The position numbers were made by a program, and so were the translations under genes. This document shows, piece by piece, positions 11,545-48,321 of a stretch of DNA of 64,000 nucleotides. The notes under the pieces were generated by a model. That model did no database searches. It was not told the DNA's origin and was given only the letters and a program-made list of their open reading frames with translations. Location: the sequence record KJ019142.1; one strand, 5' to 3'. Position 1 is the first letter of the stretch. The number at the start of each line of letters is the position of its first letter.

Positions 11545-12237
11545 ATGCAAAAGAAAAACCGTATCTCCCACGAAGAAGAAATCAAACTATGTCGCCAAGC
11601 ACAACTACATGATCATACATCCAAGTATGCTATGACTAAAATGGTTAACGCTAATATTGGGTTGGTTGAAAAACTTGCCAACAAACTCTACATCAAGAAT
11701 GATCAATACTCTTTTGATGACCTATACCAAGAGGGTGTATTTGGTCTTATCAGAGGAGTGAATAAGTTTGATCCTAGTGTTGGGTGTAGGTTTTCCACAT
11801 ATTCATACTACTGGATCTATAGTTATATCATGAGGTATTGTGAGAATAACCTAGGTAAGATCCGTATTCCCACTCACCTCCGTGAGAAGATGAGGAAACA
11901 GAAAGATAATAAGGTAGAGTTGGACAGACTAAAGTCCAAAGTCCCGTCAGTAGTATCATTAAATACAATAGTGGGTGAATCACTATCCTTGGATAATGTA
12001 GTTACATACACCGAGAATATCTCATTTGATGATGAGATGGAACATGTTTTGGTTGTTATGGATGAGGTTTTGGATGAAAGAGAACACCAGGTTCTCTGTA
12101 GTAGGTTTGGTATTGGTGGCGAGAAGCCACTATCCCAGAGAGAGTGTGCTAAACTACACAATGTTACCCATGGTGCTATCTATTTGATTGAGAAGAAATC
12201 AATCAAGAAAATCAAACACCATATGGGGTATAAATAA
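11545..12237 (+). CDS. sigma70-family RNA polymerase sigma factor (not gp55-type)
   Basis: region 2 DDLYQEGVFGLIRGVNKFDPSVGCRFSTYSYYWI; region 4 HTH LDEREHQVLCSRFGIGGEKPLSQRECAK. Confidence 0.9.
   Translation: MQKKNRISHEEEIKLCRQAQLHDHTSKYAMTKMVNANIGLVEKLANKLYIKNDQYSFDDLYQEGVFGLIRGVNKFDPSVGCRFSTYSYYWIYSYIMRYCENNLGKIRIPTHLREKMRKQKDNKVELDRLKSKVPSVVSLNTIVGESLSLDNVVTYTENISFDDEMEHVLVVMDEVLDEREHQVLCSRFGIGGEKPLSQRECAKLHNVTHGAIYLIEKKSIKKIKHHMGYK
12229..12236 (+). promoter_or_regulatory. T4-type late promoter TATAAATA
   Basis: exact match upstream of the cytidylyltransferase; further exact copies at 13447, 15397, 51671, 53655, 55834. Confidence 0.8.
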
Positions 12238-12253
12238 TACTATAGTAGATTCT

Positions 12254-13468
12254 ATGACGATGAGATCGTTTCTAACATTCCTAACTGAGGCTCGTTCTCG
12301 TGCATCTAAAAGAGCCAAAGAGTTGGGACTCACTGGCAACGGTCATGGTGGATGGGAAGATAGCGAAGGTAACCTAGTCGCTATGACTGTGAAGGGTGAT
12401 CTGGAGTTTGTGAAGGGAAGAGAACCCAAAGAGGAAGAAGAACCCGATGAAAAGACTTCTGCCCCTGAAGAGGAACCAACATCCAACAAAGCGCCTGGGG
12501 TAGATCCAGAAAATACAGATACCCCACAACAGGAACAACCAGCACCTGTTCCCAAAGATAAAGGTATTCTAACTGTTGCTTTCGGTAGGTTTAACCCTCC
12601 TACTATTGGGCATGAGAAGTTAATTAATACGGTAGCATCATATTCCGAGGATGGAGATTATATTATTGTTCCTTCCCGTAGTGAAGATAAGAAGAAGAAT
12701 CCTCTAGATGTTGATACAAAAGTCAGCATCATGAGGCAGATGTATCCACAACATGCCGAGAAGATTGTTAACGATCCACATAACAGAACCATCTTTGATG
12801 TTATGCGTAAGGCGCATAATGATGGTTACGCTGGTATTAGGATTGTTGGTGGTGGAGATAGAGTTAAGGAATATGAGAAGTTAGCCAACGCATATAACGG
12901 ATCTACCTATCAGTTTGATGAAATTGATATAGTAAACGCTGGTGACAGGGATCCAGATGCGGAAGGTGCGGAAGGTATGTCTGCCTCCAAGATGAGAAAG
13001 GCGGCAGCTGATAATGACTTTGCTTCTTTTAGAAAGGGAATGCCAAAGACTCTCAGTAACGACCAGATGGTTTCTATCTACACTCAGGTTCAGAAGTCTA
13101 TGGGTGTAACACCTAAGGAAGCTGTAATTGAAAACTGGAAAGTTGCTCCTAGACTGTATCCACAGGAACTGAGAGAGGCTTATATCCAAAACGAAATCTA
13201 TAATATTGGTGATACTGTCAGTCATGACACCACTGGTATGGTAGGTAAGATCGTAAGAAAGGGAACCAATCACCTCATTTGTGTAACAGAAAGTGAAGAG
13301 ATGTTTAAGACCTGGACACAGGATGTGAGTCCTGCCGACCTAAAACCACAACCAGCAATCTCTACTCCAAAGGAGAGGGAAGTTGGAACAGATTCCCTCA
13401 GATCTTTCCTTCAGAGAATCACTCCAGGGGAGAAAGAGCAATCCTTTATAAATAAACATAAGAAATAA
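12254..13468 (+). CDS. cytidylyltransferase-like nucleotidyltransferase (HIGH superfamily)
   Basis: AFGRFNPPTIGHEKL, KNPL, GGDRV, GMSASKMR motifs; start taken at ATG after the late promoter. Confidence 0.88.
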   Translation: MTMRSFLTFLTEARSRASKRAKELGLTGNGHGGWEDSEGNLVAMTVKGDLEFVKGREPKEEEEPDEKTSAPEEEPTSNKAPGVDPENTDTPQQEQPAPVPKDKGILTVAFGRFNPPTIGHEKLINTVASYSEDGDYIIVPSRSEDKKKNPLDVDTKVSIMRQMYPQHAEKIVNDPHNRTIFDVMRKAHNDGYAGIRIVGGGDRVKEYEKLANAYNGSTYQFDEIDIVNAGDRDPDAEGAEGMSASKMRKAAADNDFASFRKGMPKTLSNDQMVSIYTQVQKSMGVTPKEAVIENWKVAPRLYPQELREAYIQNEIYNIGDTVSHDTTGMVGKIVRKGTNHLICVTESEEMFKTWTQDVSPADLKPQPAISTPKEREVGTDSLRSFLQRITPGEKEQSFINKHKK

Positions 13469-29924: not shown

Positions 29925-29950
29925 CACCACTCCTCACGGGGTGGTTTTTT
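29925..29950 (+). terminator. intrinsic terminator
   Basis: ACCACTCC/GGGGTGGT stem plus T run. Confidence 0.75.
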
Positions 29951-29971: not shown

Positions 29972-30280
29972 TTGGGTTACATTATGAAAGCCGACGCACA
30001 ACTAGAACACCACGCCAATTGCTGGAATGCTATTCGAAATAATGATAAGGAATACTTTAAGATAGGAGTTGGTGTTTATAAAACCATCAACGCTGACAGG
30101 GAATACTATATCAATAGTCGTATTGAAACTGATAAGAAGAGTGATATATCAGAAATGGATCAAGTGAAAGAAGCCCACTCTAAACACTTAAGTTACTTCA
30201 TTGGATACAAATCAGAAGTAACAGTTGAAGCTATCAGTAGTGATTGGAAATCTACATTATACCGGGTTACTACCTGCTAG
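29972..30280 (+). CDS. hypothetical protein
   Basis: 102 aa ORF. Confidence 0.6.
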
Positions 30281-30300
30281 GGTGTGTTATAATAGATGAA

Positions 30301-31311
30301 ATGCATGTTGTGATGAAAGCTTTAATCTCTGGAATTACAGGTCAAGATGGATCCTATCTTGCTGAACTTCTACTTAAGAAGGGGTATGAAGTCCATGGTA
30401 TTATTCGTAGAACCTCCTCGTTTAATACAGGAAGAATCGATCATATCTTCGATCAGTTACACCTCCACTACGGGGATTTGACTGACTCCCTGAACATAGT
30501 CTCTATCATTAAGGAAGTAGAACCTGATGAGATCTACAACCTAGGGGCACAGAGTCATGTGAAGGTATCATTCGAGATCCCTGAATACACTGCACAAACA
30601 GACGCTCTGGGAACTCTACGAGTATTGGAAGCAGTCCGTCTCCTAGGTATGGAGAATAGAGTTCGTATCTATCAGGCATCCACTAGTGAGTTGTATGGAT
30701 TAGTTCAGGCAGTTCCACAGAAAGAAGATACCCCATTCTATCCACGATCCCCATATGGTGTAGCGAAACTCTATGGTTACTGGATTATAAAGAACTACAG
30801 AGAGAGTTATGGGATGCACGCTAGTAGTGGTATCCTATTCAATCATGAGTCACCACGACGGGGTGAGACCTTTGTAACTCGTAAGATTACTAGGGCACTC
30901 TCTCGTATCAGTACAGGACTACAAGATGTTCTCTACCTAGGTAACCTAAACGCCAAGAGGGACTGGGGACACGCAGAGGACTTTGTAGAGGCTATGTGGT
31001 TGATGCTCCAACAGGATAAACCTGATGACTATGTGATTGCCACCGGGGAACAATACTCAGTTCGTGAATTTGTAGAGGCATCTGCTGAATACTTTGGTAT
31101 GAAGATTGAGTGGCAGGGTGAGGGATTAGATGAAGTGGGTATAGATAGATTCACTAAGAAAGTCGTTGTTCGTGTCAGCGATAAGTATTTCCGTCCAGCA
31201 GAAGTTGAGTCTCTCTGGGGAGATCCTACCAAGGCTAAAGAGGTATTAGGTTGGAAACCTAAGCATACCTTTAGTTCTTTGGTTGAAGATATGTGTATTT
31301 ACGGTCAGTGA
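30301..31311 (+). CDS. gmd: GDP-mannose 4,6-dehydratase
   Basis: [48 protein letters not shown]. Confidence 0.97.
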
Positions 31312-31313
31312 TT

Positions 31314-32240
31314 ATGAAAAAGGGTTCAACGGTAGCAGTATTTGGTTCGGGTGGATTGGCTGGAAGTGCCATCACCAGGGCACTCAGGTGTTCCTTTATG
31401 GCACATAAGATTCTTACCCCTAGGAGTAAGGAACTAGACCTAAGAGAACAGGCAGATGTTCGTAGTTGGTTTAAGGAGAACAAAGTTGATTATGTATTCT
31501 TAGCCGCCGCCCTAGTTGGTGGTATTATGGCTAACAAGACTAGAAAGGCAGAGTTCTTACACGACAACCTAATGATGCAGTGTAATGTAATTGACTCTGC
31601 ATACTATAGTGGAGTAAAGAAACTCCTATTCTTAGGTACCTCTTGTATCTATCCAGCAGGAAGACACCATCCACTAGTGGAACATGAACTACTCACAGGA
31701 CTATTAGAACCAACCAATGACGCATACGCAATCGCAAAGATCGCAGGGATCAAACAATGTGACTTCTACCGAGAACAATATGGATTTGATGCTATCTCTA
31801 TCATGCCTCCTAATCTATATGGTCCTGGAGATAATTTCAATGAGGGATCAGGACATGTCCTCGCCTCATTGATGAATAGGTTTCACCTAGCGAAGGAAGC
31901 AGGTGCATCTAGAGTTGAATGTTGGGGTGATGGATCACCTATGAGGGAGTTTCTATATGTGGATGACTTAGCAGATGCTTCCTTATACTTTATGAATAGT
32001 TATAGTGAGTCTGGGCACATTAATACTGGGACTGGTAGGGATGTAACTATCAAACAACTAGCGGAGACTATTGCTGATGTAGTTGGATACAAAGGTGAGA
32101 TAGGTTGGGATACAACTAAACCCAACGGAAACCCAAGGAAACTACTTGACAGCAGTAGGGCAAACCTGTTAGGATGGGAACCCAAGGTTAAATTTGAAGA
32201 CGGAATCAAACTCACATACAACTGGTATCTAGCACAATGA
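31314..32240 (+). CDS. fcl: GDP-L-fucose synthase / GDP-colitose synthase-like epimerase-reductase
   Basis: AALVGGIMAN, LGTSCIYP, LEPTNDAYAIAK, PPNLYGPGDNF, REFLYVDDLA. Confidence 0.95.
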   Translation: MKKGSTVAVFGSGGLAGSAITRALRCSFMAHKILTPRSKELDLREQADVRSWFKENKVDYVFLAAALVGGIMANKTRKAEFLHDNLMMQCNVIDSAYYSGVKKLLFLGTSCIYPAGRHHPLVEHELLTGLLEPTNDAYAIAKIAGIKQCDFYREQYGFDAISIMPPNLYGPGDNFNEGSGHVLASLMNRFHLAKEAGASRVECWGDGSPMREFLYVDDLADASLYFMNSYSESGHINTGTGRDVTIKQLAETIADVVGYKGEIGWDTTKPNGNPRKLLDSSRANLLGWEPKVKFEDGIKLTYNWYLAQ

Positions 32241-33430
32241 CAAAGATTACAAATGGATATACGTGGCCTCTTATGAAGGACACTGTGACCAAGAGAGATA
32301 GGTTGAGGATGGCAAAGTTTATCCTCACCAGTGATAGACTAACACAAGGTAAAGAAGTTCGTAAGTTTGAGGAGCAGTGGAGTGAGTGGCTTGGAGTTAA
32401 ACATTCTCTTTTTGTTAGCAGTGGCAGTACCGCTAACCTACTTCTTGTGTCTGCTTGGAAGGAATTATACGAGATCCCAGACCAGTCGAAAGTAATTGTA
32501 CCTGCTTGTACTTGGGTAACTAATGTTGCTCCTATCATCCAGTGTGGTTTGACTCCAATCTTTTGTGACATCAACTTAGAAGACTACTCCTTTGATCTGG
32601 ATAAACTACAGGATATTCGTGATGAATATCACGATGACATCAGAGGTATCTTTGTTACTCACCTCCTAGGATTTCCTGCTAATGTGGAAAAGTTTCGTGA
32701 TGTTTTCCCCGACGCTCATATTCTAGAAGATGTATGTGAGAGTCACGGAGCAGTCCTCCCTAGTGGTGATAAGGCGGGAACCTTTGATGTTGGTGGCACA
32801 TTTAGTTTCTACTTTGGGCACCACATGACTACCATTGAAGGTGGTATGGTGAGTACTAATGATCCAGAACTCTATGATCTAATGAGAATGAAGCGTTCTC
32901 ATGGGTTAGCGAGAGAATCACTATACTTTGAAACATACAAAGAGAAGTATCCTGATGTAAATCCACAGTTTCTCTTCGTTACTGAGGGATATAACTTCCG
33001 TAATACTGATCTAGCTGCTGTATTAGGACAGTCTCAACTGAAGAGACTAGACAGTATGATTGGGATTCGTAACAGGAACTATGAGTTATACCAACAATTA
33101 CTAAAGAAACACGAACATGACCTTACACATGAGTATGGTGGTTCTTTCTATATCCCCTCCACACAGGGGGATGTAAGTAGTTTCTGTTTTCCATTTGTAG
33201 TTGATAATATGCACTGCTATCTTAAGTTAAAAGAACTTCTAGAAGAATACTATGTTGAGTATCGACCTATTGTGAGTGGTAACCTCCTACGACAACCATT
33301 CTTGAGAGAATATTCTGCTGAGTGTCCCAAGGCAGATATAGCCCATGAAAAGGGACTATATATTGGGAATAATCACTTTGTAGATGAGTCTAACTTTCAC
33401 ATGCTAGATGAGATTTTGAGCCAACTTTGA
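32237..33430 (+). CDS. colD: PLP-dependent GDP-4-keto-6-deoxymannose 3-dehydratase (ColD-like, DegT superfamily)
   Basis: SSGSTANLL, EDVCESHGA, SFYFGHHMTTIEGG (His in the Schiff-base Lys position), RPIVSGN, GLYIGN. Confidence 0.8.
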   Translation: MTKITNGYTWPLMKDTVTKRDRLRMAKFILTSDRLTQGKEVRKFEEQWSEWLGVKHSLFVSSGSTANLLLVSAWKELYEIPDQSKVIVPACTWVTNVAPIIQCGLTPIFCDINLEDYSFDLDKLQDIRDEYHDDIRGIFVTHLLGFPANVEKFRDVFPDAHILEDVCESHGAVLPSGDKAGTFDVGGTFSFYFGHHMTTIEGGMVSTNDPELYDLMRMKRSHGLARESLYFETYKEKYPDVNPQFLFVTEGYNFRNTDLAAVLGQSQLKRLDSMIGIRNRNYELYQQLLKKHEHDLTHEYGGSFYIPSTQGDVSSFCFPFVVDNMHCYLKLKELLEEYYVEYRPIVSGNLLRQPFLREYSAECPKADIAHEKGLYIGNNHFVDESNFHMLDEILSQL

Positions 33431-33431
33431 T

Positions 33432-34226
33432 ATGACATTTTCATTTAATCATATGGGCAACTTGGGGCATCTGGGAAACCAGATGTTTCAGTATGCCGCA
33501 CTCATTGGTATGGGGGCTAAGCATGGGAGGAGTATTTGTATCCCCCATAAACAAAGTTTTGGGCAATCATACTACCAGGATCTTCGTAGTAATATCTACG
33601 ATGCTTTCAACCTCTCACCCAATGGTGTAGGTATCAGTAGGTTCCCCACAGTTCAGGAAGGTAGTTTCCACTTTGATGAAAACTTATTTGAGAACCCACC
33701 AGATGAGAACTGTAACCTCTATGGATTCTTCCAGAGTGAAAAGTGGTTCTCACATATCAAAGAAGGTATTAGGAAAGAGTTCACTCTAAAGGATGAGTAC
33801 CGGGAAGTGGCACAACTGATGAGAGAACAACTCTCTGGTCAGGTTGTTGCTATTCATGTTCGTAGAACTGACTACCTATCCAATCCAAACCACGGAGCAT
33901 TGGGTTTAGATTACTATGAGAAGGCACTGGAGTTGGTTCCTAATAACCTTACAGTAGTTGTATTCACTGATGATCCAGAGTGGGCTAAAGAACAACCACT
34001 CTTTCCAGATGATAGGTTCTTTGTATCAGAGACAGACTGTCCCTATACAGACCTTGCTCTTATGAGTATGTGTGATTATCATATTATTGCCAACAGTTCA
34101 TACTCTTGGTGGGGTGCATACTTATCTGATAGTAAGAAAGTAATTGCTCCTAAACAGTGGTTTGGGGAACCACTTAAAACAAATAACCTGAAAGATCTTT
34201 ATTGTGATGGGTGGGTGAAACTATGA
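33432..34226 (+). CDS. GT11 alpha-1,2-fucosyl/colitosyltransferase
   Basis: GHLGNQMFQYA, GFFQSEKWF, HVRRTDY, IANSSYSWWGAYL. Confidence 0.93.
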   Translation: MTFSFNHMGNLGHLGNQMFQYAALIGMGAKHGRSICIPHKQSFGQSYYQDLRSNIYDAFNLSPNGVGISRFPTVQEGSFHFDENLFENPPDENCNLYGFFQSEKWFSHIKEGIRKEFTLKDEYREVAQLMREQLSGQVVAIHVRRTDYLSNPNHGALGLDYYEKALELVPNNLTVVVFTDDPEWAKEQPLFPDDRFFVSETDCPYTDLALMSMCDYHIIANSSYSWWGAYLSDSKKVIAPKQWFGEPLKTNNLKDLYCDGWVKL

Positions 34227-34846
34227 GTAACTTTGCAAGTGCTAAACAGTTTATCAAGAATGGTATTGATACACAACAGGAGTCTATCTCTGGTGGTGGC
34301 AGCACTATGGCTTCCACAGTTGCCTTCAGATACTTCCTACCAAAGTATATCAAACAGTATGGTATTGAGAGTATCTTAGACATTGGGTGTGGTGACTGGC
34401 ATTGGATGTCTACTATCAGAGAAGAGTTTCCTGATGTAGACTATGAGGGATGGGATGCCTCTGAGGATATGATTAATCCCATGACTGAGAAGTATGGAAC
34501 AGAGAATACTAGGTTTGAGGTAAAGGATATCATTGATAACAAGTATCCCAAAGTGGATTTGGTTATCGCTCGTGATGTTCTATTCCATCTCAAAGAGGAT
34601 TACCTAAAGAAGGTTCTCAAGAATATCAGTAAGGCAGGTGTGAAGTATCTACTAGCAACCACCTTTCCAGGTTTACCTAAGAACGAAGAACTCACTCCTA
34701 AGAAATATGACGGTTGGGGATTCAGACCAATCAATCTGGATATCGAGCCTTATAATATGAAAGATTATTGTATCAATGATTTCAAGGAAACGACAGCCCC
34801 TAACAGAGGATACTATCGTCATGTCTATTTGTATGAGGTAAAATGA
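34223..34846 (+). CDS. class I SAM-dependent methyltransferase
   Basis: ILDIGCGD...GWD...DLVIARDVLFHL. Confidence 0.85.
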   Translation: MSNFASAKQFIKNGIDTQQESISGGGSTMASTVAFRYFLPKYIKQYGIESILDIGCGDWHWMSTIREEFPDVDYEGWDASEDMINPMTEKYGTENTRFEVKDIIDNKYPKVDLVIARDVLFHLKEDYLKKVLKNISKAGVKYLLATTFPGLPKNEELTPKKYDGWGFRPINLDIEPYNMKDYCINDFKETTAPNRGYYRHVYLYEVK

Positions 34847-34995
34847 AGATCGAAATTGAACTATCTAAAGATGTAGAATACAAAGGAGAGAAACTAGGTG
34901 AGTATATCTGGAACCTAGAAGAGGGAATTAATCATGTTACTGGTTTTGGTGATTCACTTGAGGAATGTTTTAAGGAAATTGTGAGGTTTAGATGA
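34843..34995 (+). CDS. small hypothetical protein (50 aa)
   Basis: coupled at both ends (ATGA overlaps); read by eye. Confidence 0.5.
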   Translation: MKIEIELSKDVEYKGEKLGEYIWNLEEGINHVTGFGDSLEECFKEIVRFR

Positions 34996-35723
34996 AGAAA
35001 GTAGCTATTATCTTTATTGGAACAGGTAGATACCTAGAGTTTCTACCAAAGTATTATGAACAGGCAGAAGCAAACCTCTTCCCTGACAGACCCAAACACT
35101 ACTATGTGTTTACTGATGGTGACTTAGGTAATGAACTACCTGACAATGTAACTGTATACGAACAGGAACATCTTCAATGGCCATACATCACCCTCTATCG
35201 TTTCGGTATTATCCAGAAACACCTAGAGGAGATTGAGAAGGAGTGTGGTTTCCTACTCTTTATGGATGCTGATACACAGGTAGTATCCCCTGTATCGTTC
35301 GATGAAGTATTCAGGAAGGGAAAACCCTATACAGGTGTTCATCACCCCTGCCACGCCCTGAATATGCCACCACACAATGAGTTTCCTGGTAGTCTAGAAA
35401 CTAATACAGCATCCAAGGCAGCATGTAAACCTGGTGATGACTTCTCTGTATATTGGCAAGGTTGTGTATGGGGTGGAAACATAAAGGGTGCTCGTAAGAT
35501 TATTGATACTCTCCACCACAGAACTAAACAAGATGAGGAGAATGGAATCATTGCCAAGTGGCATGATGAAAGTCATATCAATAGATACTTCCTTGATAAC
35601 AAAGATAAGGTGAATACCCTATCACCTAGTTTCGCATACCCAGAGTCCTTCACTGAGTATATGGAAGACTACGAACCTAAGATTGTACACCTAGCAAAAG
35701 AGAATTCTAAGTATCAGGTATGA
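34992..35723 (+). CDS. GT6 family (ABO-type alpha-1,3-Gal/GalNAc transferase)
   Basis: IGTGRY...YYVFTD...WP...FMDAD...VWGG...WHDESHINRYF. Confidence 0.9.
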   Translation: MKKVAIIFIGTGRYLEFLPKYYEQAEANLFPDRPKHYYVFTDGDLGNELPDNVTVYEQEHLQWPYITLYRFGIIQKHLEEIEKECGFLLFMDADTQVVSPVSFDEVFRKGKPYTGVHHPCHALNMPPHNEFPGSLETNTASKAACKPGDDFSVYWQGCVWGGNIKGARKIIDTLHHRTKQDEENGIIAKWHDESHINRYFLDNKDKVNTLSPSFAYPESFTEYMEDYEPKIVHLAKENSKYQV

Positions 35724-36343
35724 GTTACTTCACAGATTATGACAACGAATTCACAGTATTTGAGGCACCAAAGAACGGGGGAACTACTCTCCGTCTTTGG
35801 ATATACTACGCAGGAACAGGGGAGTTGGTGAAGTCAGCGGAGTCTGAATACTACGCTGGCACTGGAGAAACATACAAACAACTCCAAGAGTGGGGTTATG
35901 TGAATGGGGAATACGAGAACCCCAAGACCCAGATGGTATGTATCAAGAGAGACCCTGTAGATAGGTTTGTAAGTGCCTTCTATGATAAGGTAATCAAAGA
36001 GGGGAGAATCAAAGTAACCATCGATGAGTTTCTCTCAAACTATGAAGAGATACTTGATAAGTCTACCCTCAAGATGAATGATGGTAAGACTAACTTCATG
36101 AAGTTTCACTTTGAGTCACAGACATATCACTTTGGTAAAGATAGAGATCTATATCATAAGGTCTTTGATATCTCAGAGGTTGGTACTGGTCTGAAGAAGT
36201 ATCTGGAGAGTAAGTGGAATATAGAACTACCTGATGTCCATGCTAGAAATAGTGGTGGTGGTAGAAAGTTTGATCTCTCCAGGGGACAACTGAATAAGGT
36301 AAAGGAAATTTACACACAGGACTATTATAATGGGTGGTACTGA
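35720..36343 (+). CDS. sulfotransferase family 2-like protein
   Basis: PKNGGTT (5'-PSB-like), RDPVDRFVSAFYD (3'-PB-like), HFESQ. Confidence 0.8.
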   Translation: MSYFTDYDNEFTVFEAPKNGGTTLRLWIYYAGTGELVKSAESEYYAGTGETYKQLQEWGYVNGEYENPKTQMVCIKRDPVDRFVSAFYDKVIKEGRIKVTIDEFLSNYEEILDKSTLKMNDGKTNFMKFHFESQTYHFGKDRDLYHKVFDISEVGTGLKKYLESKWNIELPDVHARNSGGGRKFDLSRGQLNKVKEIYTQDYYNGWY

Positions 36344-37115
36344 AGGATATATCCTGATAGGTATTGGTGATAGGTATCTACAGATGACAGAGAACCTCAC
36401 TAAAACTCTAAAGAAACATGGAGATAATAGAGGATCCCTAACTATCACAAGATCGGATAATAGGGAACTCTATAGTGAGTGTAACACTGAGTTTGAGAGG
36501 AATGGAACTCTACCTAAGATTACCTTAGATAGATACTTACCTTTTGATCACAATATATTCCTAGATGCTGATATGTTATGTGTAGGTGATACACAACATG
36601 TATGGGATCTATTCAGGAGTAGTGATCAGTTTGTTCAACAGGTAGGATGTTTGGGAAGAGATCCTAACTTCCACGCTCACCAGTATGAGAGTGAGTTGGG
36701 TTTTGAGATTCCTAGAGTCCATGGTGGTTGTATCTACATCAATAGAGAGAAACTAGACCCAGGGTTCTTTCCCTATATGAGAGAGTGTTTCCTAAACTAT
36801 AAACAAATATTTCATAATAGTGGTCTAACCTATAAGAATAGTAGACCAGATCAACCACTATACGCTCTAGCAAATGGTATGTGGGGATTTAAACCTGTGG
36901 ATCTATACACTAACCCTATCATGACTATTGTGAATGATAGTACCCCACCCCCACTAGATAGTGTGTTCTTCAATAAGAAGAGGGGTCCTAAGTTAGATAC
37001 TCCTGTTCCCTTTGTTCATGTATTCCGTGGAGAAGAGGGTATGTCTAGGGGTTATACTAGAGGTGACCAGAAGATGTTGTTGTCCCATTATGATTACTAC
37101 CTGAACTATGAATAA
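36330..37115 (+). CDS. GT-A fold glycosyltransferase (GT8-like)
   Basis: IFLDADML DxD motif, DQP motif. Confidence 0.65.
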   Translation: MGGTEGYILIGIGDRYLQMTENLTKTLKKHGDNRGSLTITRSDNRELYSECNTEFERNGTLPKITLDRYLPFDHNIFLDADMLCVGDTQHVWDLFRSSDQFVQQVGCLGRDPNFHAHQYESELGFEIPRVHGGCIYINREKLDPGFFPYMRECFLNYKQIFHNSGLTYKNSRPDQPLYALANGMWGFKPVDLYTNPIMTIVNDSTPPPLDSVFFNKKRGPKLDTPVPFVHVFRGEEGMSRGYTRGDQKMLLSHYDYYLNYE

Positions 37116-37896
37116 AACTATATGGATGTGTTGGTTCCAGGGTTGGGATAAGGCACCAGAGATTACAGAGAAGTGTTTAGAGTCCTGGAAACACTACAAT
37201 AGTGATTGGGATATTGTTCTACTAGATGAATCCAACTACAAGGATTACATCTCCATTGATAAAGAACTACCAGGACTGAAGACAAACTATATCTCACTGG
37301 GTGATATCCTTCGTCTCTTTCTACTAAAAGAGCATGGTGGAGTATGGGCAGATGCAACTATCTTCTGCAACAAACCAGTGGATTGGGTTTTGGATTATGA
37401 GGATTCTTTCATCTTCACCAGGAAGGATAAGATGATTGCCTCTTGGTTTGTTGCTGCTCAGAAAGATTCCCATGTTGTAGATGTATGGTATAATAAGATG
37501 TTAGAGTTCTGGAAGTATCGTATGGAAAATACAGATACTTTCGAGCAACAATATGGTTGGATACACGCTTTGTTCCGTCAGTCCTACGCTCAGGATAGGG
37601 GGTTCAGGGATATTGTAGATAGTATGGATAAGATTGATTGCATGAGTGATGGTCAATCTAGAGGTAAGGGTCCGCACTTTTTTGCACCCTACAGTAAATA
37701 CTTCTACAACCCTATCAGTGACACGATAAAGAATCGTATAGACTCTAAAGTTGATCCACTATATAAGTTGTCTTACAAGGCAAACACAGACTGGAGAAGT
37801 CCAGAGAACAGGGGTATCCACCCAGCAGACCAAAAGATTATGTTGGAATATCCAACTAATAGTGAACTACATTATCTACTCAACACATTAAAATGA
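37108..37896 (+). CDS. capsular polysaccharide synthesis protein (DxD glycosyltransferase, GT32-like)
   Basis: IWMCWFQG...CLESW...DILRLFLLKEHGGVWADAT. Confidence 0.85.
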   Translation: MNKTIWMCWFQGWDKAPEITEKCLESWKHYNSDWDIVLLDESNYKDYISIDKELPGLKTNYISLGDILRLFLLKEHGGVWADATIFCNKPVDWVLDYEDSFIFTRKDKMIASWFVAAQKDSHVVDVWYNKMLEFWKYRMENTDTFEQQYGWIHALFRQSYAQDRGFRDIVDSMDKIDCMSDGQSRGKGPHFFAPYSKYFYNPISDTIKNRIDSKVDPLYKLSYKANTDWRSPENRGIHPADQKIMLEYPTNSELHYLLNTLK

Positions 37897-38798
37897 CAAA
37901 TAAATCATTGGTTACCGGTGGCGCGGGTTTCATCGGGTCACATATTGTGGACCGACTTATTACACTAGGACATCAAGTCGTAGTGATTGACAATGAATCC
38001 TCTGATGGTCATGATGAATACCATTGGAACAGAAGCGGACAAGTACAAAACCATAAGGCAGACATTCGTGACTACGATGCAATCAAACACTTGTTTGGTG
38101 GAGTCAATAATGTTTTTCACCTTGCCGCTAAAGCATCAGTACAGGCGTCAGTAGATAACCCCCTACCAACTATTGCCACACAGGTAATGGGAACCGCCAA
38201 TGTATTGGAGGCAGCACGACAATCTGGTGTGAGTAAGTTTGTATATTCCTCTACTAGTGCTTGTTATGGTAACAACAACCCCATTCCTAATGTAGAAACG
38301 ATGAGAGAAGATCCTCTCAACGCCTATGCTATTGGTAAGTTATCTGGGGAACAACTAGTTCGTGCCTATCACTACCTCTATGGTATGAAGACGGTGGCAT
38401 TCCGTTATACCAATGTGTATGGGGAGAGGGCAAGACACGTAGGACACTACGCTCCTGCTGTTAGTAAGTTCCTAAAGATGAGAGCACAGGGAGAACCTCT
38501 AACTATCTTTGGTGATGGCGCCCAACGCCGAGACTTTATTCATGTATCTGATGTAGTCAACGCTAATTGCTGTATTACCTATGAGGAACTAGAGCAGTGG
38601 GGTGAGACCTATAACATTGGTTATGGTAAGAACTGGAGTATCCAAGAGATCGCAGACTCTATCAGTCAGGAACAGATTCACCTATCTGCTCGTACTGGTG
38701 AGATGCGTGAGACGCTTGCTGATATTGGGAAGGCAAAGGCAGAGTTGATGTGGAAACCAAAGACTGACATCATGGATTGGATTAGGGTACAACTCTGA
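37893..38798 (+). CDS. NAD-dependent nucleotide-sugar epimerase/dehydratase
   Basis: TGGAGFIGSH, FHLAA, YAIGK, RYTNVYG, RDFIHVSDVV. Confidence 0.93.
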   Translation: MTNKSLVTGGAGFIGSHIVDRLITLGHQVVVIDNESSDGHDEYHWNRSGQVQNHKADIRDYDAIKHLFGGVNNVFHLAAKASVQASVDNPLPTIATQVMGTANVLEAARQSGVSKFVYSSTSACYGNNNPIPNVETMREDPLNAYAIGKLSGEQLVRAYHYLYGMKTVAFRYTNVYGERARHVGHYAPAVSKFLKMRAQGEPLTIFGDGAQRRDFIHVSDVVNANCCITYEELEQWGETYNIGYGKNWSIQEIADSISQEQIHLSARTGEMRETLADIGKAKAELMWKPKTDIMDWIRVQL

Positions 38799-39415
38799 TG
38801 CCAGTATTTCAGAAGGACAACAAGAAAGTTCTATTCATCCATGTTCCCAAGACTGCAGGAAGTTCTGTGAATAAACTCTTTGTGAATAATGGATATGAAA
38901 TGTCCTACTATTCTGAGAGTTCTAAAGATCTATACAATGGATTATGTGGACCACAACATCTGGACTCACTTCTATTGGAAGATGAGTTCCAAGATTTCTC
39001 TCAGTTTGATTATATCTTCTCTATCTTCAGAGACCCAGTAGACAGACATCTATCTGAGTTCACCTGGGCACCCTGGGGACTAATGGGTAGAAACATCTAC
39101 ACACCAGAAAGATTTGATGAGTGGTGTCCTAAGATATTCAGAGCGTATCAGGACTCACCATATAGGATGGATAATCACATTAGACCTCAACATGAGTTCT
39201 ATGTCAATGGATGTGATGTGTATGACTATGAAAATATCAATACACTCACAGAGAAACTATGTGATAAAATAGGTCTAGATAATAAAGAGATGCCATATGA
39301 AAGGTCTTCACGATATGATAGTGAGGATTATGTCATCTATGAAGATACTTACAATTGTATTACTGAATTTTACAAAGGAGACTATCAATGGCAAAAGGAT
39401 TCAGTCCTGTTGTGA
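38798..39415 (+). CDS. sulfotransferase family 2-like protein
   Basis: FIHVPKTAGSS, FRDPVDRHLSEF, HIRPQHEF. Confidence 0.85.
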   Translation: MPVFQKDNKKVLFIHVPKTAGSSVNKLFVNNGYEMSYYSESSKDLYNGLCGPQHLDSLLLEDEFQDFSQFDYIFSIFRDPVDRHLSEFTWAPWGLMGRNIYTPERFDEWCPKIFRAYQDSPYRMDNHIRPQHEFYVNGCDVYDYENINTLTEKLCDKIGLDNKEMPYERSSRYDSEDYVIYEDTYNCITEFYKGDYQWQKDSVLL

Positions 39416-40266
39416 CTAAGGATAAGAACAAGTCCCAGTTCAAACTACAGGGTGTTCCTAGGATTTACTACATCAGTTTAGATGATCATGCTCATCGTCA
39501 AGACTATATGGAGTCCCAGTTTGAAGACTGGGGCATCACTAACTTCGAAAGAATCTCTGCTCATGATGGTAGAGGTGATAATGATCTGAGTGATATTCTC
39601 AAAGGATCTTATCCAAAGATGATGAGTTCTGGTGAGGTTGGTTGTGTAACCTCTCACCTAAAGGCACTAAAACACTGGTTAGATACTACAGAGGGTGAAG
39701 AGTTTCTCCTTATGATGGAGGATGATTGTGATATCTCCACTGCTGCCCACTGGGGTTTCTCCTGGAGGGAGTTTATTGGGAATATTCCATCCCATGTAGA
39801 TTGTGTTCAGTTAGCAGTTATCAACCCATCAGAACTACATATCAAACTCCATATCAGGTTTGTGAATGATTTCTCCACTGCCTCATACCTAATCCGTAGA
39901 TCACACGCAGAGAAGTTAGTTAGACTCTATTGTAGGGGTGATAAGTATAAACTTGATAGTGATATCAAACCCAGAGCAGTTGCTGATGATCTTATCTACA
40001 ACTCTGGTGTGACTCTTGCTATGCCTCTATTTGCCTTCAAGATTGCACTAGGTTCCAGTATCCATGATGTCCATATCAATACCTTCCACAAGAGTAGTCA
40101 TGATGGTATCTGGGAGTTTTGGAAGAAAACAGCACCAACTATTGAGAACTGGAAACCATTCTTCAACTATGATGCCTATCTGGGAACCCTACCACCCAAT
40201 GTTGTGGTTCAACAATGGCAGCAAAAACAGGAATCCAAAGCAAAAGATTCAGGGGCTTCGCAATAG
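39388..40266 (+). CDS. GT25 family glycosyltransferase
   Basis: YISLDDHAHRQ...FERISAHDG...GEVGCVTSH...MEDD. Confidence 0.88.
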   Translation: MAKGFSPVVTKDKNKSQFKLQGVPRIYYISLDDHAHRQDYMESQFEDWGITNFERISAHDGRGDNDLSDILKGSYPKMMSSGEVGCVTSHLKALKHWLDTTEGEEFLLMMEDDCDISTAAHWGFSWREFIGNIPSHVDCVQLAVINPSELHIKLHIRFVNDFSTASYLIRRSHAEKLVRLYCRGDKYKLDSDIKPRAVADDLIYNSGVTLAMPLFAFKIALGSSIHDVHINTFHKSSHDGIWEFWKKTAPTIENWKPFFNYDAYLGTLPPNVVVQQWQQKQESKAKDSGASQ

Positions 40267-40310
40267 AACATATATATGTTATAATATTTACATTCACCCA
40301 TGAGGTTATT

Positions 40311-40430
40311 ATGAAATTTGGTTTTACCCCCGAAGCAGAAATCCTAAACGCTCGTTTGGCAATGTTGGGATTCGTTATCGCCGTAGGCACTTACTTGACC
40401 ACAGGTCAGATTATTCCAGGAGTTCTTTGA
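40311..40430 (+). CDS. hli: high-light-inducible protein
   Basis: [13 protein letters not shown]...TGQIIPG; ATG 40311 after RBS GAGG. Confidence 0.92.
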
Positions 40431-41084: not shown

Positions 41085-41090
41085 TATTAG

Positions 41091-41118
41091 AAGGAGGGTT
41101 TGATACCCTCCTTTTTTT
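41091..41118 (+). terminator. intrinsic terminator
   Basis: AAGGAGGGT/ACCCTCCTT plus T run. Confidence 0.8.
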
Positions 41119-41165: not shown

Positions 41166-43481
41166 ATGGCATTTAAGATTAATGGCGTAGTACGCATTGA
41201 TAATAGTGGCAACGGTTTTCTGGGAATTGTAACCGCTACCGACGCTAATATCACAGGAGTTCTCACTGCCACTGAGGTGGATGCGAAAGTATCATCTAAG
41301 GCAATAACTGAACAAACAGATGGAACCGTAGATGATGTAACTGGTGCAGATGAACTATTACTATTAGATGCTGAGACTGGTGGATTACTAAGAGTATCAA
41401 TAGATGAGTTCGTGCAGGGTTCAGGCATTGGAACTCTAGTAACGGACTTTGATAACTTAACTGTTACTGGTATCACAACCGTTGCCACCCTCAAAGGTAT
41501 TGGATCTAATAACATCAGTGTAGGGAGCACACTTTCCTTTGCTGATGGTACAGAGATCATCATGGGTGACTCTGGTGACTTCAGTATTCATCATGATGGT
41601 GACCATACTTACCTAGATGAGACGGGGCAGGGTAATCTAAAACTCCGTACAAATAACTTTAGAGTAACAAATATAGCAGAAACAAAACCAGCTATTACAG
41701 CACAGGTTACTTCTGGTGTTGAGTTGTATTTTGATGGTAATAAGAAGATAGAAACTACAAATACTGGTGTTCTTGTGAGTGGTATGCTCACTGCTGATAG
41801 ATTAAGATCAGGTGATATTGCTGCTAGAAATGTAATCACACTGGGTATTACCACTATCCAAGATCATTTGGAAGTGAATGATAGTACTGGTTCTGGTACG
41901 GAATATAATCTTAATGTTAAGACTAATGGTAGTTCTACCTTTGGTGTCTTAGGTAATGGAAATATTCTACTTGGAAACAGTTCCGGTGCTCCATTCATGG
42001 CGACGAATGATCACCACGCAACTTCCAAGAAATATGTAGATGACGCCATCGCTGATGATCCTAGCGGTGCTGCGGCTTGGGGTACTGTTGCCTCAAACAA
42101 CAGTGGTGGTGCTAGTAGTATTACTTTACTGGGTGGGATGAATGTAGCAAGTGTCACAGCTGGCACATCAAATGCAAAAGGAAATTTCGTGGTTACATTT
42201 GCCACTCCAATGCCTGATGCAAACTATTCAGTAACCGCTAGTTATAATAACGCTAATGTTAACACATATGGGGATATTAGTGTAGGTTCTAAAACAGCAA
42301 GTAGTTTTGAGGTTCAAACTTTTGAATCATCAAATCTGCCTGACTGGCAGGGGTTTGGATTTGTCGTCTTCGCAACCAATGCCCTCCCACCAACAGGCGG
42401 CACCGGCACAGATAGCTGGGCAGCTGTAGATCAAACTATTGTTAATGGTGCTTGTAATGTACCAGCTAGCTTTAATGTTGCGTCAGTAACTAGAACTGGA
42501 CTGGGCCTATATGACGTGGTGTTTACAACGCCGATGCCTACTGATAAATACAGCGTTGTGGGTAGCATTACCCGAGACACATTTTCTAATTTCTGTACTT
42601 CTAATAGGTCGGCTACTGGCTTTACAGTAAAGAACACCTATCAGAATCGCGATAACGGTGCTACTCAGTATGCAGACAACCCTTTCTCCTTCACCGTCAA
42701 CGCCACCAACGCAACGCTACCTGAAACTATTACAACGGATCAGTTTACCTCTGCGTTTAATGCTCCTACCTTCAAAAACATTCTCATCAATGGAAATCTG
42801 ACAATTAATCAACGTAATGTTAATATTACATCTGTTTCTGCCGGTGAATATGGTGAAGATCGTTGGAAAAAGACATTAGGTGGGATGACGCAGATTGTTG
42901 AAGATGGTAATTATCTACCAAGTTCTTCTTACACTTTATCTGGAACAGGTATTACTACAACTACAGCAAACTCACCTGCTTCTGGTGACTGGGACATCTC
43001 AACAACCTTTGGTGATATTCCTATTACTGCTCGTTCTATCCAACTTGAATATGGCAACGTAGCCTCAGCGTTTGACTTGAGACCGGTTGGGGTGGAGCTG
43101 AGTTTGTGTCATCGTTATTTTTATAGAATAATAAGGTCCGTCAACAGCACTCCTTTTACTATTAAATCTAACAGTAACTCAAACGACATTCCCGCTGTAG
43201 GCTCGATCGAGTGTTCTTACAGTGTAGTTTTTCCAGCCATAATGAGAACCCAACCTACTGGCTCAAATTACAGTAACAACGGAGCAAATAACTATTTGGC
43301 AATTCCAGGATATAGGGCTATTACTAACTCTTTTCTGGCAAGCGATGTAAGTTTTTCATACGCATCCTCTGAAGCCGCAGTAATTTTAGTGGATACGACC
43401 TTAGGGAGCATCGGAGTAGTTCAAGGAGCTGCGTTCCCGCTAGAGGCGGCTTTTAGTTATGACATCGACGCCGAACTTTAA
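41166..43481 (+). CDS. tail fibre / receptor-binding-like protein
   Basis: 771 aa Gly/Thr/Ser/Asn rich; VELYFDGNKKIETTNTGV fibre motif; duplicated W...NVASVT...F.TPMP..YSV domain; late-type CATAAATA upstream. Confidence 0.8.
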   Translation: MAFKINGVVRIDNSGNGFLGIVTATDANITGVLTATEVDAKVSSKAITEQTDGTVDDVTGADELLLLDAETGGLLRVSIDEFVQGSGIGTLVTDFDNLTVTGITTVATLKGIGSNNISVGSTLSFADGTEIIMGDSGDFSIHHDGDHTYLDETGQGNLKLRTNNFRVTNIAETKPAITAQVTSGVELYFDGNKKIETTNTGVLVSGMLTADRLRSGDIAARNVITLGITTIQDHLEVNDSTGSGTEYNLNVKTNGSSTFGVLGNGNILLGNSSGAPFMATNDHHATSKKYVDDAIADDPSGAAAWGTVASNNSGGASSITLLGGMNVASVTAGTSNAKGNFVVTFATPMPDANYSVTASYNNANVNTYGDISVGSKTASSFEVQTFESSNLPDWQGFGFVVFATNALPPTGGTGTDSWAAVDQTIVNGACNVPASFNVASVTRTGLGLYDVVFTTPMPTDKYSVVGSITRDTFSNFCTSNRSATGFTVKNTYQNRDNGATQYADNPFSFTVNATNATLPETITTDQFTSAFNAPTFKNILINGNLTINQRNVNITSVSAGEYGEDRWKKTLGGMTQIVEDGNYLPSSSYTLSGTGITTTTANSPASGDWDISTTFGDIPITARSIQLEYGNVASAFDLRPVGVELSLCHRYFYRIIRSVNSTPFTIKSNSNSNDIPAVGSIECSYSVVFPAIMRTQPTGSNYSNNGANNYLAIPGYRAITNSFLASDVSFSYASSEAAVILVDTTLGSIGVVQGAAFPLEAAFSYDIDAEL

Positions 43482-46696: not shown

Positions 46697-47755
46697 ATGA
46701 CTGCTTCACTTGCACCCCCAAAAAGCAACGGGGGTTGGTATGATATTTTAGAAGACTGGTTGCAGAAAGATAGGTTTGTCTTTATTGGCTGGTCTGGATT
46801 ACTACTTCTTCCCACTGCTTATCTTGCCATTGGCGGCTGGCTTACTGGCACAACTTTTGTCACGAGTTGGTACACCCATGGTCTTGCTTCTTCCTATCTT
46901 GAGGGTGCTAACTTTCTCACGGCGGCTGTCTCGACTCCTGCTGATGCTATGGGTCATTCTCTTCTTCTACTTTGGGGTCCTGAATCTCAGGGCGACTTCC
47001 AGCGGTGGCTCCAACTTGGAGGGCTTTGGTCCTTTGTTGCTCTCCACGGTGCCTTCGCTTTAATTGGATTCATGCTTCGTCAGTTTGAACTGTCACGACT
47101 CATTGGTATCCGTCCCTACAACGCTATTGCATTCAGTGGTCCTATCGCTGTATTTGTCAGTGTGTTTCTTCTATACCCACTAGGTCAATCTTCCTGGTTC
47201 TTTGCCCCCTCCTTTGGTGTGGCAGCAATCTTTAGATTCCTATTGTTTCTTCAGGGTTTCCACAACTGGACACTGAACCCCTTCCATATGATGGGAGTTG
47301 CTGGTATACTAGGTGGAGCACTACTATCTGCAATCCATGGCGTTACTGTTGAAAATACCCTATATGAAGATGGAGAACAGAATAACACCTTCACTGCGTT
47401 CGATTCCACCCAGGAGGAAGAGACCTATTCGATGGTTACTGCGAACCGCTTCTGGTCGCAAATCTTCGGGGTTGCGTTTAGTAATAAGCGTTGGCTTCAC
47501 TTCTTTATGTTGTTTGTTCCTGTCATGGGTCTTTGGGTCTCAAGTATTGGGATCATTGGGCTTGCTCTTAATCTTCGTGCTTATGATTTTGTGAGCCAAG
47601 AGATTAGAGCAGCAGAAGATCCTGAGTTTGAAACTTTCTACACAAAGAACATCCTTCTTAACGAAGGACTAAGAGCATGGATGGCACCTGTGGATCAACC
47701 ACATGAGTCATTTGTATTCCCAGAAGAAGTTCTACCTAGAGGTAACGCATTGTGA
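46697..47755 (+). CDS. psbD: photosystem II D2 protein
   Basis: [19 protein letters not shown]-like [27 protein letters not shown]; ATG 46697. Confidence 0.99.
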
Positions 47756-47997
47756 TTAACGCACTCTTCACTTTTATATTTGCTGCGGTGATGTGGGTGC
47801 AAGTCCCACAGTGGCAGGATGATTGGTCTAAGTGCGCAGTAGATGTACCTGATGTTCAATGTCATTGGTATATCACAGCACCCGATAGCACCATGGGTGA
47901 AGGATTTAGTTGGGCGAATGCCCCTTGGTTCAGTGCTGAAGGTCTCCTTGATATTGGAGAACTTCACAACACAGTTCAATCACTTCAGGAGGCATGA
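47752..47997 (+). CDS. conserved cyanophage hypothetical protein
   Basis: signal-like N-terminus, [13 protein letters not shown]. Confidence 0.7.
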
Positions 47998-48209
47998 TGA
48001 ATATATTATTTTTAGTATTATACTTCGTCTGTTTCTGTCTCATTGCAGGTGGTGCCGCAGCTATGATGTATGCAAACATACAATCTATCTGGAACACACC
48101 ACCCGCTCCACCTAAACCAATTCATCCTGAGGCACCTGTAGCAGGTGAAGAGGTTATGTATGTCGATCTAACAAGAGAAAAACTGGAAGATTTGTACCAT
48201 GAACATTGA
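47994..48209 (+). CDS. small membrane protein
   Basis: N-terminal TM, HPE...YVDL. Confidence 0.65.
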   Translation: MMNILFLVLYFVCFCLIAGGAAAMMYANIQSIWNTPPAPPKPIHPEAPVAGEEVMYVDLTREKLEDLYHEH

Positions 48210-48321
48210 ATACCTTTTAGGTTGGGTTGCTATTCTTGTTTTGTTTATAGCAACACAGAATACTGATGATGACGATGATCCAGAAGGTGGTATGATGGTT
48301 CCTTCCACTCAATCTACATAA
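48199..48321 (+). CDS. small membrane peptide with acidic tail (40 aa)
   Basis: TM then DDDDDPEGGMM; read by eye. Confidence 0.55.
   Translation: MNIEYLLGWVAILVLFIATQNTDDDDDPEGGMMVPSTQST

Follow-up and report, generated by a model that had tools for sequence, protein, structure and literature searches.

Predicted blood-group-type GT11-GT6 glycosyltransferase module with a putative colitose supply in the marine cyanophage ACG-2014f

The DNA analyzed here, a 64-kb stretch of sequence record KJ019142.1 (hereafter the window), was identified as part of the 222 kb genome of Synechococcus phage ACG-2014f, a T4-like cyanomyovirus (Kyanoviridae, genus Atlauavirus) infecting a marine cyanobacterium, and equals positions 123148-187147 of KJ019085.1 (isolate Syn7803US13). 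It carries a glycan-synthesis island of 13 mostly overlapping genes at 30313-40266, all on the plus strand, as are the promoter- and terminator-like elements around them, in which a glycosyltransferase family 11 (GT11) gene at 33432-34226 is followed two genes later by a family 6 (GT6) gene at 34992-35723. A megablast search with window positions 30244-40266 matched 49 Synechococcus phage records, with 100% identity in three ACG-2014f isolates, and the open reading frames (ORFs) were intact and 98-100% conserved over 45 ACG-2014f isolates. The original prediction held that these two glycosyltransferases follow the enzyme logic of ABO blood-group synthesis, possibly with colitose replacing fucose and with O-methylation of the product. 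This logic and both refinements are well supported by sequence, synteny, and distribution, while the interpretation as a whole is partly supported.

The GT11 gene comprises an intact 264-aa ORF with exactly the bounds given beforehand and encodes a putative alpha-1,2-L-fucosyl/colitosyltransferase-family glycosyltransferase (PHROG 2644). Its family assignment was borne out by Pfam Glyco_transf_11 (PF01531; E 3.3e-28, 99 bits against a cutoff of 24, profile positions 38-296 of 298) and by the H-x-R-R-x-D nucleotide-sugar motif, present as HVRRTD (residues 142-147, window 33855-33872), and the GenBank label already reads "glycosyltransferase family 11." A search by sequence for a solved GT11 structure returned only spurious matches to designed TPR proteins. 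The GT11 enzymes WbgN of Escherichia coli and human FUT2 take GDP-L-colitose, GDP-L-fucose, and GDP-L-galactose in assays (PMC11987014), and the natural role of WbgN in E. coli O55 is alpha-1,2-colitosyl transfer, with GDP-fucose as a further donor (PMC11987014, PMC12723683). Donor discrimination by GT11 enzymes is thus not strong, and the authors concluded that the sugar added by GT11 is set by substrate supply (PMC11987014, PMC12723683).

The GT6 gene, likewise an intact ORF (243 aa) with bounds exactly as predicted, encodes a predicted retaining alpha-1,3-glycosyltransferase of the DXD type consisting of a minimal catalytic domain, and is labeled "glycosyltransferase family 6" in GenBank. 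Pfam Glyco_transf_6 (PF03414) matched with E 3.5e-21 (75.7 bits, cutoff 25), and the closest solved relatives were Bacteroides ovatus BoGT6a (E 2e-27) and about 60 human ABO entries (about 6e-17). Residues were compared in HMMER alignments with the BoGT6a numbering of PMC3516806. The DAD motif (residues 92-94, window 35265-35273) was aligned to BoGT6a N95-A-N97 and to DVD of human ABO, and WHDESH (residues 190-195, window 35559-35576) to the WHDES segment with the catalytic Glu, such that W190-H-D-E193 pairs with BoGT6a W189-E192. This Glu is kept in all GT6 (PMC3516806), and among the 81 related viral sequences of the Synechococcus-phage clade, of which 78 were readable at the active-site columns, W-H-D-E was unchanged in all 78. 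The families and motifs named in the original prediction were thus confirmed as more than chance matches, as was its statement on NXN and DXD: in most bacterial GT6, NXN stands in place of DXD (PMC3516806). The DXD retained in the phage protein would imply metal dependence. The NCBIfam model NF041524, "family 6 glucosyltransferase," scored 174 bits, below its cutoff of 250, and its name was dropped as a clue to the donor.

An A/B-type acceptor site that admits a 2'-fucose has His at position A1 and small residues at positions A2 and A7 (PMC3516806). Position A1 of the phage GT6 is His118, as in fucosyl-acceptor enzymes (Gln in the alpha-1,3-galactosyltransferase alpha3GT), and A2 is Cys120, a small residue where A/B-type enzymes have Gly/Ser and alpha3GT has Trp (Trp249). 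Tyr153, Trp189, Glu192, and Lys231 of BoGT6a pair with phage Tyr154, Trp190, Glu193, and Lys236. The donor motif Q156-G-C-V (window 35457-35468) was aligned to M-G-A-F of the B-type human ABO chain 2o1g; the same stretch is A155-G-G-L in BoGT6a, specific for N-acetylgalactosamine (GalNAc), and H-A-A-I in the galactose-specific alpha3GT (PMC3516806). Q-G-C-V is closer to the galactose-type M-G-A-F than to the GalNAc-type A-G-G-L and therefore points to a hexose donor lacking an N-acetyl group, probably galactose rather than GalNAc, and so to a B-like and not an A-like product. A true A or B antigen is not supported, given a donor motif that is not of the GalNAc type and a His at A7 in place of Ala or Ile. 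The specificity and catalytic columns were invariant in the 78 readable sequences whatever L-sugar supply cassette accompanied the gene, except for donor-motif position 4 (V/L/I/F), and a test for co-variation between active-site residues and cassette accordingly found none.

The pairing of the two genes extends well beyond ACG-2014f. In the phage collection, GT6 relatives were present in 72 records and GT11 relatives in 103, and the module was spread over at least 574 IMG/VR viral contigs with a GT6 relative (708 protein clusters), of which the best 80 loci were used for locus statistics. GT11 lay no more than 2 kb from GT6 in 77 of these 80 loci, the remaining three being truncated on one side. 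It was situated directly upstream of GT6 in 61 loci, directly downstream in 4, downstream within about 1.1 kb in 5, and upstream with at least one gene between (gaps of 635-1940 bp) in 7. S-PRM1, S-CAM9, S-8S53/55, Bellamy, and B3 carry the two genes side by side, and roughly 1.5 kb separates them in P-SSM2 and P-SSM5. In cellular genomes (best 80 of 446 GT6 matches), GT11 was found within 7 kb in 45 loci and adjacent in 22. The GT11-GT6 link is general, and far tighter in these phages than in cellular genomes. S-CAM7 encodes Gmd, Fcl-like, and ColD-like proteins and GT11 with no GT6; GT11 alone therefore occurs and GT6 without GT11 almost never, as would be anticipated if GT6 depends on the product of GT11. 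Together with the acceptor His, this near-constant neighborhood speaks for the proposed sequence of an H-type step followed by an A/B-type step. Of the 46 related loci whose downstream flank was complete, 37 also had a GT25 homologue, which in 13 came immediately after GT6. The gene next downstream of GT6 was not conserved between phages, and only the two sulfotransferase-like paralogues of the window resemble each other there.

Three genes directly upstream of GT11 would supply its donor sugar. The first encodes the GDP-mannose 4,6-dehydratase Gmd (30313-31311; TIGR01472 equivalog 559 bits, cutoff 415; GDP_Man_Dehyd E 4e-152), followed by an Fcl-like epimerase/reductase of the GDP-L-fucose synthase family (31314-32240; NCBIfam and PDB matches), a candidate GDP-L-colitose synthase whose top PDB match is the E. 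coli GDP-fucose synthetase Fcl (1.9e-91). The third gene (32237-33430) is annotated as "hypothetical protein" in GenBank and as "aminotransferase" in RefSeq and PHROGs and encodes a putative ColD-like GDP-4-keto-6-deoxymannose 3-dehydratase, dependent on pyridoxal or pyridoxamine phosphate, of the Pfam DegT family. The top PDB matches of this protein are four ColD entries (including 2gms and 3gr9; E 8e-51), and ColD outranks other 3-dehydratases and far outranks true aminotransferases. Its His195 was aligned to ColD His188, a column altered in the PDB variants 3b8x and 2r0t; in ColD this catalytic His occupies the column of the Schiff-base Lys of aminotransferases. Both existing labels are probably wrong and that of a ColD-like 3-dehydratase appears better. 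Because the ColD-like gene lies directly downstream of the Gmd and Fcl-like genes, GDP-L-colitose synthesis is the best reading, and the suggestion of colitose in place of fucose gains support from the ColD match, the His at the ColD His188 column, and the Gmd and Fcl-like genes just upstream. The Fcl-like protein scored 420 bits against the Fcl equivalog NF047922, under its cutoff of 500, which is compatible with colitose-synthase-like divergence without proving it. Higher Fcl-like identity among ColD-bearing loci was considered as a sign of a switch to colitose synthase and rejected, since GT11 and GT6 show the same pattern, which thus follows phylogeny. A literature search found no paper tying colitose to cyanophages.

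Genes for GDP-L-sugar supply adjoin the GT11-GT6 pair wherever they are recognizable, and occur in three versions among the viral loci of the IMG/VR scan. Gmd with Fcl was found in 12 loci, Gmd with Fcl and ColD (the lineage of the window) in 4 loci plus one cut off before Gmd, and a cassette of GDP-mannose 3,5-epimerase (GME) in 28 loci, the last encoding a 373-aa short-chain dehydrogenase/reductase (SDR) with E 1.7e-81 to plant GME; no recognizable L-sugar supply gene was found within 7 kb in 30 loci. GME homologues lie directly upstream of GT11-GT6 in S-PRM1 (locus L004, 6062-7183), S-CAM9 (L005, 6065-7186), and Bellamy (L006, 6113-7198), where, as in similar loci, they are labeled "nucleotide-sugar epimerase" or "UDP-glucose 4-epimerase." These homologues imply a version of the module fed by GDP-L-galactose. 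Cassette type tracks the phylogeny of GT6 and GT11 (44/45 and 45/45 nearest neighbors), an agreement that rules out frequent cassette swapping and therefore indicates lineage-specific versions.

Within the window, GT11 and GT6 are separated by a class I S-adenosylmethionine (SAM)-dependent methyltransferase gene (34223-34846; Pfam Methyltransf_12/25/31/23 and O-methyltransferase domain matches) and by an annotated 50-aa ORF with no function assigned and no Pfam match (34843-34995), in agreement with the spacing of two genes first described. The small ORF is missing in locus L012, where the methyltransferase gene abuts GT6. Genes that separate GT11 from GT6 elsewhere usually encode a SAM methyltransferase of another family: FkbM type in P-SSM2 and locus L081, Methyltransf_11/31 in L035 and L070, and TylF type together with another in L079. 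Four Pfam types of methyltransferase were thus found in this slot, and the recurrence of non-orthologous methyltransferases at the same place in other phages supports the idea that the glycan may be O-methylated.

The island continues downstream of GT6 with a first sulfotransferase-like gene (35720-36343; Pfam Sulfotransfer_2 29 bits, cutoff 22), a weakly GT8-like protein with a D-A-D segment (36330-37115; Glyco_transf_8 E 0.017, below cutoff; PHROG 1903, unknown function), a Caps_synth/DXD sugar-binding (GT32-like) glycosyltransferase (37108-37896; PF05704 E 5e-41, PF04488 E 2e-8), an SDR nucleotide-sugar 4-epimerase-like enzyme (37893-38798; Pfam Epimerase E 2e-62; best NCBIfam match GalE, 176 bits, below its cutoff of 262), a second sulfotransferase-like gene (38798-39415; Sulfotransfer_2 34 bits, cutoff 22; PHROG 3347 "Galactose-3-O-sulfotransferase"), and a GT25 gene of the lipopolysaccharide (LPS) beta-glycosyltransferase family (39388-40266; PF01755 44 bits, cutoff 24), a candidate maker of the beta-galactoside acceptor. 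The 261-aa protein of 36330-37115 displays an F-L-D-A-D-M segment and may be a further GT-A glycosyltransferase. The two sulfotransferase-like paralogues have P-K-x-G-x-[TS] and R-D-P-V-D-R segments in common, and the S-CAM7 island encodes an adenylylsulfate (APS) kinase (locus L168, 28727-29296); the two genes and this kinase suggest that the phage-made glycan is sulfated. GT11, GT6, GT25, and the sulfotransferase-like gene of 38798-39415 are placed by PHROGs in the category "auxiliary metabolic gene and host takeover." A Kyte-Doolittle scan of the 13 island proteins (19-residue window, mean of at least 1.6 taken as transmembrane-grade) reached a maximum of 1.52, so that none has a transmembrane-grade segment and all are predicted to be soluble; export would therefore have to rely on the host.

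The island appears to form one transcription unit with the hli-petF-hli genes that follow it, the first hli (40215-40430) starting in a different frame, 52 nt ahead of the stop codon of GT25. The unit is bordered upstream by a terminator-like hairpin with a T-run (29926-29945; 8-bp stem with five GC pairs) and downstream, after hli-petF-hli, by a second terminator-like hairpin that is its probable end (41089-41115; 11-bp stem and T-run). An extended -10-like promoter element, TGTTATAAT (30284-30292), matching by consensus only, lies about 20 nt before gmd. In 31 of 40 distinct loci, TATAAT lay no more than 70 nt ahead of the module's first gene, compared to 8% of random windows, and often directly after a terminator hairpin; TGnTATAAT was found in 13 of 40, compared to 1%. 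A whole sigma-70 promoter scan was not enriched (39 found against 40.8 expected from shuffles), and only the site-specific TATAAT comparison is informative on promoters; at the level of consensus, it suggests that the module forms a unit of its own, transcribed from a promoter of sigma-70-like type. A tail-fiber gene (41166-43481) follows shortly after the island, which lies in a hypervariable region. Elsewhere in the window, and from annotation only, a 980-aa hypothetical protein (7719-10661) lies between two DNA adenine methylase genes at 6375-11542, and downstream of them are genes resembling those for a phage sigma factor (11545-12237) and a cytidylyltransferase (12260-13468). Two short "carboxylesterase" ORFs (47749-47994 and 48196-48318) with a 213-nt ORF between them could be fragments of a split gene.

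The closest cellular matches to the phage GT6 displayed 51-54% identity (loci L088, L089, and L090) and came from short contigs with the phage-type synteny Gmd-Fcl-GT11-GT6 or GME-GT11-GT6, assigned to metagenome-assembled genomes (MAGs) of Chitinophagaceae, Thermoplasmatales, and Methanobacteriota. These three are probably mis-binned phage contigs, placed in MAGs to which they are unrelated. Among genuine cellular relatives, the best was 41% identical, and one Synechococcales MAG reached 34%; such distant relatives imply that the phage GT6 clade was not copied recently from a host gene. Genomes of marine Synechococcus or Prochlorococcus were absent from the best 80 of 446 cellular GT6 matches; within that sample the hosts seem to be without a close GT6, although the sample does not prove this absence, and the phage would then introduce a determinant beyond the synthetic capacity of the cell.

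Enzyme families, catalytic motifs, synteny, and distribution are observed; the order of steps, sugars, linkages, carrier, and biological role in the following scheme are inferred from them. Gmd would convert host GDP-mannose to GDP-4-keto-6-deoxymannose, from which the ColD-like dehydratase and the Fcl-like reductase would form GDP-L-colitose, or GDP-L-fucose if the dehydratase step were skipped. A beta-galactoside acceptor would be built on a carrier that the phage does not encode, probably by GT25 with UDP-galactose from the 4-epimerase of the island. GT11 would then add the L-sugar alpha-1,2 to the acceptor galactose, the methyltransferase would O-methylate the glycan, and the presumably metal-dependent GT6 would add an alpha-1,3-hexose, probably galactose, to the same galactose, giving a blood-group-B-like branched cap that the remaining glycosyltransferases and the two sulfotransferase-like enzymes could elaborate further. 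Assembly would most likely be cytoplasmic, inside the infected cell and on a lipid-linked envelope glycan of the host, and export by host machinery would alter the cell surface. A role of the glycan in shielding virions, masking receptors, or evading grazers, as first suggested, found no support. Remodeling of the host-envelope glycan by such a B-like module is tentatively favored over glycosylation of the virion, at somewhat less than an even probability.

Several points weigh against this scheme. Position A7 of the phage GT6, read by ungapped extension, is His233, where GTA/GTB and P-SSM2 have Ala and BoGT6a has Ile; it is neither small nor the Trp that blocks fucose in alpha3GT, which leaves acceptance of a 2'-substituted galactose probable but not certain. 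The BoGT6a acceptor contact Thr134 is aligned to Pro132 of the phage enzyme. Colitose is without the 3-OH of fucose, and to our knowledge no GT6 accepts a colitosylated galactose. The sub-cutoff score of the Fcl-like protein cannot tell a fucose synthase from a colitose synthase or from an enzyme serving as both. The island encodes no initiating transferase, flippase, polymerase, ligase, or ABC transporter according to Pfam and hydrophobicity of its 13 proteins, and its promoter support is at consensus level only. A literature search found no report of product, activity, or expression for ACG-2014f or close relatives, and the hypervariable region beside the tail-fiber gene fits virion glycosylation equally well.

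The same chemistry with virion proteins (capsid, tail, or fibers) as the carrier, resulting in changed stability, adsorption, or recognition, is the strongest alternative, although rather unlikely. The soluble enzymes of the island, without genes for a lipid carrier or export, would suit direct glycosylation of proteins in the cytoplasm, and the island stands in a hypervariable host-recognition region with the tail fiber soon after it (directly after it in S-CAM7). Virus-encoded glycosyltransferases have precedents in chloroviruses, whose member PBCV-1 has genes for Gmd, a fucose synthase, and methylating glycosyltransferases devoted to the glycans of its capsid, and in some mycobacteriophages, which glycosylate capsid and tail-tube proteins. 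However, the literature search found no glycosylated cyanophage virions, and the island is co-oriented and probably co-transcribed with hli and petF rather than with structural genes, from a -10-like element of the host sigma-70 type. The bacterial GT25, GT11, and GT6 relatives, moreover, act on lipid-linked LPS/O-antigen intermediates (PMC11987014).

A second alternative, that GT11 and GT6 act on the same glycan but on different galactoses, with GT6 working like an alpha-1,3-galactosyltransferase on an unsubstituted beta-galactoside or another residue and no A/B-like branch arising, is considered unlikely. It draws on the non-conservation of the BoGT6a Thr134 contact and on His233, situated where a small residue admits fucose and Trp excludes it; synteny shows a shared pathway only, and another gene splits the pair in the 45 ACG-2014f records and a few other loci. 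Yet the acceptor His and the small residue at the position of alpha3GT Trp249 were unchanged in all 78 readable sequences, and the near-obligate linkage to GT11 (77/80), much tighter than in cellular genomes, together with the existence of GT11 without GT6 (S-CAM7) and almost never the reverse, counts against it, being what a GT6 in need of the GT11 product would show. Finally, it is very improbable that the genes are evolutionary passengers, or that their target is not a glycan but, for instance, DNA or small molecules, with no blood-group-like product made: the region is hypervariable with unconserved gene content downstream of GT6, and T4-type phages do glycosylate DNA, but the ORFs are intact and conserved among isolates, the active site is unchanged across a clade of at least 574 contigs, the accompanying nucleotide-sugar genes make a coherent pathway, and no DNA-modifying member is known in GT11 or GT6.

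A broader reading of the favored B-like module is that T4-like cyanophages possess an ancient and dedicated GT25-GT11-GT6 module for a blood-group-like cap, whose L-sugar diversified by lineage (fucose, colitose, L-galactose), which is varied by methylation and sulfation, and which re-labels the infected cell or the virion in an arms race among phage, phage, and grazer. This is speculative and unlikely; if true, viruses would have their own equivalent of the antigenic polymorphism of the ABO type. Cell-surface glycans of picocyanobacteria are the main receptors and resistance determinants in the marine setting, and a host surface rewritten by abundant phages with a determinant foreign to the host would have consequences for carbon flow, for the exclusion of superinfecting phages, and for host range under field conditions, for which the three L-sugar versions provide a natural comparison set. 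Annotation also gains from the analysis, with 32237-33430 becoming a ColD-like 3-dehydratase and the "nucleotide-sugar epimerase" upstream of GT11 in related phages a GDP-mannose 3,5-epimerase.

The novelty of the finding had been overstated, as the CAZy families were already in GenBank, the cyanophage GT6 clade was known (PMC3516806), and the surface hypothesis is standard. Cyanophage DXD-type GT6 have been in the literature since 2009-2012, and the GT11-GT6 pairing may have been described before. They constitute a named clade, "clade 1," with P-SSM2, marine-metagenome homologues, and PaGT6 (PMC3516806), and two cyanophages with GT6 were counted in PMC3961637. PaGT6 of Parachlamydia transfers GalNAc to the H-antigen or 2'-fucosyllactose with Mn2+ or Mg2+ (PMC3516806). 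Metal-dependent prokaryotic and phage GT6 have been proposed to resemble the ancestor of the vertebrate blood-group enzymes (PMC3516806), a proposal on which the phage module bears. Alteration of the surface by cyanophage "LPS genes" against co-infecting phages or grazers is likewise a standard idea (PMC9602691, PMC7029224). The island resembles these "LPS gene" islands of cyanomyoviruses and pelagimyoviruses in its hypervariable host-recognition neighborhood, its mix of nucleotide-sugar enzymes and glycosyltransferases, and its proposed role, while the papers describing them list gene families and not the GT11-GT6 module, linkage statistics, or L-sugar cassettes (PMC9602691, PMC7029224).

P-SSM2 has, at the same place in its genome, the order Gmd, Fcl, GT11, hypothetical, methyltransferase, GT6, hypothetical, SDR, GT25, hli. 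Its GT6, like that of the window, thus follows GT11 and a methyltransferase and precedes an SDR epimerase, GT25, and hli, a shared layout that favors the proposed module in spite of the divergence of GT6. Identities to the window are 76% for Gmd, 56% for Fcl, 42% for GT11, 30% for GT6, 50% for the SDR, and 60% for GT25. The GT6 of the window shares with the P-SSM2/"clade 1" enzymes a minimal catalytic domain of about 240 aa with DXD kept and without a membrane-binding tail, but P-SSM2 has the donor motif A-G-G-F (Q-G-C-V in the window) and Ala at A7 (His233 in the window), has Gmd and Fcl without ColD, and has an unrelated methyltransferase of FkbM type.

Compared to human GTA/GTB and BoGT6a, the phage enzyme belongs to the same GT-A fold family 6 and aligns over nearly the whole catalytic domain. 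It has W-H-D-E, the acceptor His, and the Tyr/Trp/Lys contacts in common with these enzymes, which work after an alpha-1,2-fucosyltransferase, whereas it is without the stem and transmembrane region of the human proteins and without the C-terminal membrane-binding domain of Bacteroides. Its DXD is as in human ABO, compared to NXN in BoGT6a, the donor motif and two acceptor contacts differ, and the predicted upstream sugar is colitose, compared to fucose for human ABO and BoGT6a.

Among bacterial gene clusters, E. coli O86 makes a B-antigen mimic with a GT11 (the fucosyltransferase WbnK) and the GT6 WbnI, an alpha-1,3-galactosyltransferase acting on H type 1, and E. coli O55 attaches colitose alpha-1,2 to galactose with Gmd-ColD-ColC and the GT11 WbgN. 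We know of no cluster documented with a GT6 step after colitosylation. The O86 and O55 clusters are cellular and have Wzx, Wzy, and initiating functions, whereas the phage island has soluble enzymes only. The island joins the ideas of O86 (GT11 with GT6) and O55 (colitose with GT11); the analysis adds a conserved GT11-GT6 module with three L-sugar lineages to what is otherwise a variant of known systems rather than a new kind of system.

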